NCBI RefSeq assembly: GCF_001194135.2
Contig: NC_068985.1
Coordinates: 25,595,159 to 25,650,479, forward strand
DNA: 55,321 bases
Source of the DNA: Octopus bimaculoides
Lineage: Eukaryota
Direction of reading: 5' to 3'
This document shows, piece after piece, positions 831 through 54,688 of this stretch (position 1 is its first letter; every line of letters begins with the position of its first letter). The position numbers were made by a program, and so were the translations under genes. The notes beneath the pieces were generated by a model. It was not told the DNA's origin and made no database searches. It worked only from the letters and a program-made list of their open reading frames with translations.

Positions 831-992
831 AGTGAATTCATTGACAGTGGATTTTGTAAGATCTCCAGCAACAAAAATATTTCCGTTTGATTGCTCTACA
901 TCGAAATATTTTGAAGCTTGATTTTTAGAACCAATGTTATTTGGAGTAGAAGGTAAATCCTCTATTTTATAAGTTATTTCATTATGTGGTGC
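831..992 (-). CDS. Cadherin exon 31 (B, 54 aa, loop insertion)
   Basis: ttacag|[54 protein letters not shown]|gtaagt. Confidence 0.9.

Positions 993-54688: not shown

Follow-up and report, generated by a model that had tools for sequence, protein, structure and literature searches.

Which calcium sites survive at the junctions of a giant octopus cadherin whose linkers lack the canonical DxNDN motif, and what takes the place of the sites that do not? The question is raised by a 55,321-nucleotide stretch of Octopus bimaculoides DNA (NCBI RefSeq assembly GCF_001194135.2, contig NC_068985.1, positions 25,595,159 to 25,650,479 of the forward strand; hereafter the window), which is an internal piece of the gene LOC106874390 and encodes extracellular cadherin (EC) repeats EC16-EC32, residues 1790-3489 of the predicted protein XP_052824186.1. 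A sequence-only reading of the window had proposed that all of the junctions along the array are altered, that calcium site 3 is kept and sites 1 and 2 are lost, and that a conserved Arg/Lys may pair with a leftover Glu in place of calcium. Having compared the window with the rest of its gene, with its relatives and with solved cadherins, we cautiously favour a reading in which the protein is a PCDH15/Cad99C-related giant and each of its [R/K]-[N/D]-type junctions (RN junctions) would hold one calcium ion at site 3 and use an Arg/Lys salt bridge in place of sites 1 and 2.

RN junctions replace DxNDN in the window

The repeats of this gene were used to build a hidden Markov model (HMM) of one repeat plus its junction. 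It matches 74 repeats in the 7919-residue XP_052824186.1, a size and repeat number that bear out the suspicion of a giant octopus cadherin, and we tabulated the residues at the calcium-motif positions of each. The 16 junction hexapeptides reported for the window are each present once, on the minus strand and in the order given by the sequence-only reading (Table 1), and its residue counts were reproduced in the HMM-aligned table. The second junction position is Asn in 13/16 and Asp in 3/16 junctions, Arg or Lys is found in 15/16, and Asp occurs neither directly before the Arg nor two residues past it. DxD and the strand-F AxD are each kept in 14/16 repeats and the xEx Glu in 9/16. At the protein's own composition, chance is excluded as the source of both the cation (P = 2e-15 for at least 15/16 Arg/Lys) and the residue beside it (P = 5e-14 for 16/16 Asn/Asp).

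Two features had been overlooked. Of the 16 repeats preceding junctions, 11 still have an acid where DRE has its glutamate (Asp in 10, in an L-x-x-D motif, and Glu in one), and the junction itself, [R/K]-[N/D]-x-x-x-P-x-F, is one residue shorter than DxNDNxPxF.

Judged by these motifs, the window departs from the canonical three-calcium class at XEX, DRE and DXNDN, with a true DRE in 1/16 repeats (EC21, VDRE) and DxNDN in 0/16, and it retains the site-3 set, in which Asn/Asp (16/16) stands alongside DxD and AxD. It also falls outside the calcium-free class (Jin 2012), whose members have calcium ligands in none of the five motifs, DXD and XDX among them; EC26-27 is the exception. There the junction is RDANTL without Pro, the next repeat lacks DxD (VVASPPPGISY) and its strand F reads ASK, so that all site-3 ligands are gone. 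Retention of site 3 along the array thus holds for most of the window and fails at this pair. The same pair reads 'RDTDTL ... VDAQPAPGISY' in Gigantopelta, with near variants in Babylonia and oyster. EC26-27, whose site 3 is missing in all molluscs examined, is predicted from these motifs to be calcium-free and could be a conserved hinge in the array.

The proposal that every junction is altered stands for the 16 junctions of the window and does not extend to the whole ectodomain, of which repeats 1-8 carry canonical or PCDH15-like junctions.

Site-3 ligands are kept and site-1/2 ligands depleted across the family

We compared ligand frequencies in 247 repeats of the family to which the octopus protein belongs, described below, with those in 1021 canonical repeats under one shared model, assigning motifs to calcium sites as in PMC7547225 and PMC8691648. 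The site-3 ligands occur at canonical frequencies: the two Asp of DxD are present in 92/90% of family repeats (89/89% in canonical repeats), the strand-F Asp in 88% of both sets, and the junction Asn in 81%, with Asp in a further 11% (90% Asn in canonical repeats). The residues of sites 1 and 2 are depleted. The DRE Asp is found in 8% of family repeats and 82% of canonical ones, the second junction Asp of DxNDN in 8% and 77%, and the xEx Glu in 67% and 95%, whereas the DRE-Glu position, occupied by Glu in 78% of canonical repeats, holds Asp in 47% and Glu in 11% of family repeats. The first junction Asp, present in canonical cadherins, is replaced or deleted. The selective loss proposed for the window is a property of the family, most of whose repeats keep the DxD and AxD residues.

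The five most divergent of the 110 model columns are those of the Arg, of the whole DRE triplet and of the second junction Asp. Outside the ion-ligand positions, the strongest family-specific difference lies at column 52, where a Tyr or Phe just before the conserved strand-D Phe (for instance DYFWV, DFFGI, QYFAI) is found in 71% of family repeats; this column is variable in canonical cadherins.

The junction cation and the junction Asn co-vary with different ligands

Among 267 non-canonical junctions from 17 proteins, the presence of Arg/Lys is associated with two features of the preceding repeat, its xEx Glu (odds ratio 5.7, p 1.5e-5) and an acidic DRE-Glu position (odds ratio 5.0, p 1.7e-4), and not detectably with the DxD (odds ratio 2.2, p 0.21) or AxD (odds ratio 1.7, p 0.26) of the following repeat. 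Asn/Asp at the second position behaves in the opposite manner: it is strongly associated with DxD (odds ratio 31, p 1e-6) and AxD (odds ratio 18, p 8e-7) of the following repeat and not with the acids of the preceding one (odds ratio ~1.3, p ~0.7, in a subset analysis). The pattern recurs when the octopus protein and the other species are each analysed separately. Within the window, the sole junction without Arg/Lys (GNTRPP) follows the sole repeat without both acids (EC23), Arg, Glu and Asp having been lost together.

A cation paired with the remaining site-1/2 carboxylates, and an Asn that serves site 3, would produce such a division into two modules. The suggestion that Arg/Lys bridges to the leftover Glu thereby gains co-occurrence evidence, which would extend it to the acid at the DRE-Glu position, and the pattern argues against Arg merely neutralising the site-3 aspartates.

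A proposed single calcium ion at site 3

PCDH15 EC5-6 provides a precedent for such a junction. It has a modified XEX, no DRE, PPNNQ in place of DXNDN and intact DXD and XDX motifs, and it binds one calcium ion, at site 3, in three crystal conformations (PMC7547225). The RN junctions match it motif by motif, having lost the site-1/2 ligands and kept those of site 3: XEX is modified, DRE is lost, the junction has the Asn but neither Asp, and the next DXD and XDX are kept. We rest the expectation of one calcium ion at site 3 per RN junction on this shared set of retained motifs. Site 3 also has the highest affinity in CDH23 EC1-2, at 5 uM compared with 44 and 71 uM (PMC7547225). PCDH15 EC5-6 differs in being a single flexible junction without a conserved cation, whereas the RN motif is shorter by one residue and is repeated over more than 50 consecutive junctions.

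A joint that binds no calcium, in which the Arg/Lys would neutralise the whole acidic cluster including DxD and the strand-F Asp, appears unlikely to us. Calcium-free junctions are widespread in long cadherins, DN-cadherin EC2-3 and PCDH15 EC9-10 among them (PMC5120219), and these resemble RN junctions in being non-canonical, without DRE and DxNDN, and part of long molecules; a fixed positive charge adjoining several carboxylates would suit such a joint, and EC26-27 has lost site 3. The known calcium-free junctions, however, also lack DXD and XDX, share no positive motif and are bent (PMC5120219). DxD and AxD stand at canonical frequency in the RN family, it is the Asn and not the Arg/Lys that co-occurs with them, and the same retained residues bind a site-3 calcium in PCDH15 EC5-6 (PMC7547225).

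Occupancy by two ions is a fairly unlikely alternative to a single site-3 calcium. The second ion (calcium, or sodium or magnesium) would be bound by three acids, namely the Glu that is retained, the Asp found where DRE has its Glu, and the second Asp of DxD, leaving Arg another role. The material for such a site exists, with Glu in 67% and Asp/Glu in 58% of repeats at two site-1/2 positions, and two-calcium junctions are found in PCDH15 EC2-3 and EC3-4 and in PCDH24 EC2-3 (PMC7547225, PMC8691648). Yet the equivalents of D100 and D103 and the DRE Asp are gone, and a cation stands at the very spot and is correlated with the retained acids, a pattern that looks more like charge pairing than metal binding.

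Register and predicted geometry of the junction

The missing residue leaves two registers for the junction. Alignment to the family model requires a one-residue insertion in 839 of the 1021 canonical repeats, and phmmer alignments to solved cadherins open a one-residue gap beside the Arg. Against seven-residue junctions, phmmer places the Arg on position 101 and the Asn on N102, which is the register of the sequence-only reading; the junction of E-cadherin EC3-4 (VVDVNEAPIF), which is short by nature, aligns without a gap and puts the Arg opposite the first Asp. Position 101 is accordingly one of two possible assignments, the shorter junction also allowing the Arg in the D100 slot. In AlphaFold models, strand G ends just before Arg103 in an RN pair and just before Asp100 in a canonical control. 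The Arg may therefore occupy the D100 slot with its side chain directed into the site-1/2 pocket, a placement that would make the replacement of calcium by arginine more natural.

We modelled EC18-19 of the window with AlphaFold2 from a 30-sequence family alignment and obtained a mean predicted local distance difference test (pLDDT) score of 96.3, a predicted template modelling (pTM) score of 0.80 and a pLDDT of ~97 at the junction. A Foldseek search of the PDB with this model returned cadherins only, and the two-domain fits were poor, with template modelling (TM) scores of 0.41-0.64 and root mean square deviations (r.m.s.d.) of 4.9-7 Å; the best structural matches were CDH23 EC12-13 (0.64) and CELSR1 EC4-7 (0.62). 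The same modelling applied to a canonical pair of a beetle Fat-like cadherin (pLDDT 97.2, pTM 0.80) gave a structure that matched dozens of solved pairs with TM scores of 0.80-0.91 and r.m.s.d. of 1.5-3.5 Å. The RN pair is thus predicted, with confidence equal to that of the control, in an inter-repeat orientation unrepresented among solved cadherins. Unlike the flexible PCDH15 EC5-6, it is modelled at high confidence in one defined orientation.

This geometry can also be read as a sign that R-N is kept for reasons other than ions, such as cis contacts between parallel molecules, backbone capping to fix the twist of a junction one residue short, or processing; calcium occupancy would then be unreadable from the motif. 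The unusual modelled orientation, the missing residue and the family-specific aromatic at column 52 would all fit. We nevertheless regard a non-ion cause as quite unlikely: the strongest differences between family and canonical repeats all fall at ion-ligand positions, and the motif residues co-vary with ligand residues. The junctions carry no consistent N-x-S/T sequon and no R-x-K/R-R or dibasic cleavage pattern, and N-glycosylation and proprotein-convertase processing were rejected as causes of the R-N pair on that ground.

Probable relation of the giant cadherin to PCDH15 and Cad99C

The junctions of repeats 1-8 of XP_052824186.1 are canonical or nearly so (EDVNDNAPQF, TDGDDRSPAF, LDKNDNPPIF, QDVNDNPPKF, LDINDNTPQV) and are accompanied by LDYE motifs; from the ninth repeat on, almost all junctions are of RN type or close variants. 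The N-terminal 866 residues have their closest counterparts at the N-terminal ends of fellow family members (Sinanodonta, 34% identity over 910 aa, then Haliotis, Batillaria and Tegillarca) and next best match arthropod cadherin-99C, which is orthologous to PCDH15. The BLASTP alignment to mayfly Cad99C (303 bits, 32% identity over 826 aa, query 82-864 to subject 99-892) starts near both N-termini, with CELSR lower at 222 bits. The junction signatures of this region correspond one by one to those of Cad99C/PCDH15, including a non-canonical EC5-6 and a DGDD-type EC2-3, the latter described for human PCDH15 (PMC7547225). In the PDB, only PCDH15 was matched as a single colinear stretch over four repeats (query 83-465 to 95-487 of 11iy_C, E 7e-35). 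In the reciprocal search, the matches of Cad99C to the mollusc giants were about as strong as its match to lamprey PCDH15, and the giants aligned from the N-terminus, whereas Fat and CDH23 aligned at internal positions. NCBI formerly named an N-terminal fragment of the octopus protein 'protocadherin-15-like'.

The other end of the molecule is seen in Patella, whose C-terminal 520 residues match Cad99C 892-1392 from one end to the other (E 3e-38). This match spans EC9, the odd EC9-10 junction, EC10 (VLDVNDNDPIFIFP vs VLDVNDNVPYFIFP), EC11, the membrane-adjacent domain and the transmembrane helix. The membrane-proximal 169 residues alone found no match in Pfam or PDB sequence searches and were identified only by the longer BLASTP alignment to Cad99C. 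Part of the Cad99C-like C-terminal region is also present in the Owenia protein.

With eight colinear N-terminal repeats and, in the Patella member, a C-terminal part colinear from EC9 to the transmembrane helix, we consider it likely that these proteins are cadherins of the PCDH15/Cad99C type in which a huge RN-type array lies between the EC8-like and EC9-like parts. The array is what sets them apart from PCDH15/Cad99C, which has 11 repeats where the octopus protein has at least 74.

No signal peptide or transmembrane segment is evident in XP_052824186.1 as modelled, and the octopus annotation may accordingly be incomplete at each end. In mayfly Cad99C, the EC8-9 junction reads DRNDNAP, and EC9 is its best repeat against the RN model (78.8 bits), sharing PxN, YF and L-x-x-E. 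Origin of the RN array by duplication of a Cad99C EC9-like repeat is a weak lead; this pattern was not reproduced in copepod or lamprey sequences.

A family in molluscs and an annelid

The family comprises 17 proteins from four mollusc classes and one annelid: cephalopod, gastropods (Gigantopelta, Patella, Babylonia, Haliotis, Bulinus, Littorina, Batillaria, Physella), bivalves (Crassostrea/Magallana, Saccostrea, Sinanodonta, Tegillarca), the chiton Liolophura and the annelid Owenia. The best homologues share 28-37% identity, and single repeats are orthologous between molluscs. In all of these proteins RN junctions are abundant and DxNDN is nearly absent, the reverse of what is seen in the Fat, Dachsous, CDH23, CELSR and N-cadherin matches; among ~100 non-family proteins, only three true RN-like junctions were found. 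A second homologue search, seeded with the annelid protein, added no further phyla. By this distribution of sequences, the RN junction has been kept since before the mollusc-annelid split.

Automated names such as 'cadherin-23-like' and 'protocadherin Fat 4-like' have been given to family members, and Fat, Dachsous and cadherin-23 do resemble them in their very long repeat arrays and in 24-29% identity over long alignments. Those proteins, however, have canonical DxNDN junctions, and Fat has EGF and laminin-G domains. No EGF or laminin-G Pfam families appear in the precomputed annotation of any of the 17 members, and at the Patella C-terminus the repeats lead directly into the Cad99C-like membrane-adjacent domain with neither domain between. 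Fat/Dachsous membership was rejected on the non-canonical junctions, the lack of annotated EGF/laminin-G domains and the colinear ends matching PCDH15/Cad99C.

Gene model and exon organization

The window contains 31 exons on the minus strand (Table 1), with AG...GT borders and phase 0 at both ends; acceptors consist of a polypyrimidine tract and AG, and donors read GT(A/G)AG. Splicing them and searching with the Pfam Cadherin model, as the sequence-only reading had suggested, gave a stop-free product of 1698 residues that matches PF00028 in 15 stretches (E 2.3e-153) and so belongs to the cadherin superfamily. Neither end of the gene lies inside the window. The product is identical to residues 1790-3489 of XP_052824186.1, which RefSeq labels 'uncharacterized protein LOC106874390 [Octopus bimaculoides]' and predicts on a 127-Mb scaffold of a chromosome-scale assembly, except at the exon 10 donor (33159 here, 33153 in RefSeq, which adds Val-Met). 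Two in-frame GT donors lie 6 nt apart at that exon end (33153-33159); RefSeq uses the distal one, with Val-Met after ARDND, and both keep the frame.

Two exon types alternate, one of ~186 nt covering strands F-G, the junction and strands A-B of the next repeat up to DxD, and one of ~126 nt covering strands C-E. In the exon at 51556-51242 the two types are fused and the intron is lost. The short exon at 46692-46567 fell below our first length cut and was found with an HMM of the other short exons (E 5.7e-8). Each repeat is thus built from two exons, with phase-0 introns at the same two positions of the fold, after DxD and before strand F, an arrangement that would fit an array enlarged through tandem duplications of exon pairs.

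Seven runs of N interrupt the window, all of them intronic (the run at 50386-50832, of 447 N, lies between exons 3 and 4), and the alternation of long and short exons is intact over each. Given this alternation and the match to the RefSeq protein, continuity and frame hold over every gap. Misassembly, a pseudogene or a chance reading frame is an extremely improbable source of the pattern: the seven gaps and the repeat-rich introns might invite such a reading, which is ruled out by 31 exons with canonical splice sites and an open frame, by the identity to the RefSeq protein and by repeat-by-repeat orthologues in other molluscs.

An older gene model of the same locus, of 1915 residues, leaves out many short exons as well as several whole repeats. 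It looks like a prediction artefact, and it could hint at exon skipping, which a gene of all-phase-0 exons would permit. ORF-like stretches (open reading frames on the minus strand) recur between introns, 42965-43243 resembling 34016-34459 and 294-528 resembling 45564-45698; they are presumably interspersed repeats. Several gaps are flanked by long microsatellites (CA, TA, CT, TATG-like, GAT), for example at 7202-7795, 17114-17823 and 26707-26995.

Table 1. Exons of LOC106874390 in the window, in order of translation, with the repeat segments and junctions that they encode (positions are those of the window).
Exon	Position	Strand	Repeat segments	Junction (position)	Remarks
1	54500..54688	-	EC16 F-G, EC17 A-B	RNKNVP (54610-54593)	EC17 with DSD
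2	52516..52668	-	EC17 C-E		LTAD where LDRE is expected
3	51242..51556	-	EC17 F-G, EC18 A-E	RNLYPP (51484-51467)	Fused exon types
4	48087..48275	-	EC18 F-G, EC19 A-B	RNTFAP (48197-48180)	Junction modelled with AlphaFold2
5	46567..46692	-	EC19 C-E		Found with short-type HMM (E 5.7e-8)
6	43240..43425	-	EC19 F-G, EC20 A-B	RNFYRP (43353-43336)	
7	39436..39576	-	EC20 C-E		
8	38519..38704	-	EC20 F-G, EC21 A-B	RNGFPP (38629-38612)	
9	35575..35706	-	EC21 C-E		Sole true DRE of the window (VDRE)
10	33159..33347	-	EC21 F-G, EC22 A-B	RNLFAP (33266-33249)	
11	31763..31885	-	EC22 C-E		
12	29732..29923	-	EC22 F-G, EC23 A-B	KDNYPP (29848-29831)	
13	27773..27901	-	EC23 C-E		Neither Glu nor Asp at site-1/2 positions
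14	25727..25912	-	EC23 F-G, EC24 A-B	GNTRPP (25840-25823)	Junction without Arg/Lys; EC23 with AAN, EC24 with DPE
15	23140..23256	-	EC24 C-E		
16	22409..22591	-	EC24 F-G, EC25 A-B	RNNYAP (22513-22496)	
17	20889..21026	-	EC25 C-E		
18	20458..20640	-	EC25 F-G, EC26 A-B	KNRNPP (20568-20551)	
19	19830..19964	-	EC26 C-E		
20	16761..16937	-	EC26 F-G, EC27 A-B	RDANTL (16865-16848)	Junction without Pro; EC27 without DxD (VVASPP)
21	14602..14727	-	EC27 C-E		
22	11879..12067	-	EC27 F-G, EC28 A-B	RNLNGP (11992-11975)	EC27 with ASK, without strand-F Asp
23	9899..10021	-	EC28 C-E		
24	9542..9727	-	EC28 F-G, EC29 A-B	KDQFLP (9655-9638)	
25	7889..8011	-	EC29 C-E		
26	7262..7447	-	EC29 F-G, EC30 A-B	RNPFYP (7375-7358)	
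27	6508..6633	-	EC30 C-E		
28	5166..5354	-	EC30 F-G, EC31 A-B	KNLFAP (5276-5259)	
29	3584..3712	-	EC31 C-E		
30	3238..3423	-	EC31 F-G, EC32 A-B	RNLNPP (3351-3334)	
31	831..992	-	EC32 C-E		Gene runs on past both window ends

Discussion

In the mechanism that we propose, site 3 would be formed by the junction Asn together with the DxD and the strand-F Asp of the next repeat and would hold one calcium ion per junction, while the Arg/Lys would pair with the strand-A Glu of the preceding repeat, with the Asp of its L-x-x-D motif, or with both, a permanent charge clamp standing in for the two weaker calcium sites. Each junction would have two clamps, mutually independent. The shorter junction would set a different twist or tilt, giving the repeats an orientation unlike that of canonical cadherins, and 74 repeats of ~4.5 nm would make a filament of ~0.3 micrometres with a canonical PCDH15-like tip available for partner binding.

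Several points weigh against this proposal. The co-occurrence analysis counts related repeats and orthologues as independent, which makes its p-values optimistic. The Glu survives in only 67% of the repeats and an acid at the DRE-Glu position in 58%, so the salt bridge cannot be universal. The canonical positions of the Arg and the Asn (101 or 102) are ambiguous from sequence, the junction being one residue shorter. Our AlphaFold models are ion-free, and the placement of two domains by AlphaFold in the absence of ions could account for part of the low TM scores in Foldseek. The octopus model stops within the array, without a membrane anchor, and the architecture of the family was pieced together from partial gene models of several species.

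We suggest, tentatively, a broader picture in which the RN junction is an undescribed class of cadherin joint, with Arg for sites 1 and 2, one site-3 calcium and a new geometry, that multiplied more than 60-fold within the spiralian PCDH15/Cad99C orthologue, between EC8 and EC9, to give a tip-link-like filament of ~0.3 micrometres. Cad99C acts at apical microvilli and in the apical attachment of sensory cilia. We speculate that the giant forms an apical link from microvilli or cilia to the overlying cuticle or to a partner cell, in suckers and elsewhere.

Part of this ground is already known. The gene and how large it is are on record, as are isolated one-calcium and calcium-free junctions in long cadherins, and a giant sucker cadherin is mentioned in the literature. 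The sequence-only reading had pointed to a very long sucker-expressed octopus cadherin, and one is indeed described in a review (PMC6062618), the text of which is silent on junction chemistry. That cadherin comes from the same species group and has more than 70 repeats (Albertin 2015), which the 74 matches in XP_052824186.1 fit, making LOC106874390 a candidate for the published gene. In the open-access literature we found no description of the stereotyped Arg-Asn junction, of its stalk-wide repetition or of its conservation in molluscs and an annelid, nor of the two-module co-variation and the link of the giant to PCDH15/Cad99C, and open-access papers yielded no mention of the oyster accession K1QE50.

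How calcium occupancy at the junctions governs stiffness, shape and calcium dependence is a live question for CDH23 and PCDH15. The odd junctions of those proteins are single and dissimilar, whereas the RN family presents one stereotyped junction dozens of times, in a relative of PCDH15. It offers a testable prediction, one calcium ion and an arginine clamp per junction with an altered inter-repeat orientation, and may serve as a natural model for engineered cadherin filaments with altered calcium dependence. The interest for cadherin structural biology and cephalopod biology rests on inference from sequence; for the giant octopus cadherin, hitherto noted only for its size and its expression in suckers, these findings would supply a molecular description.

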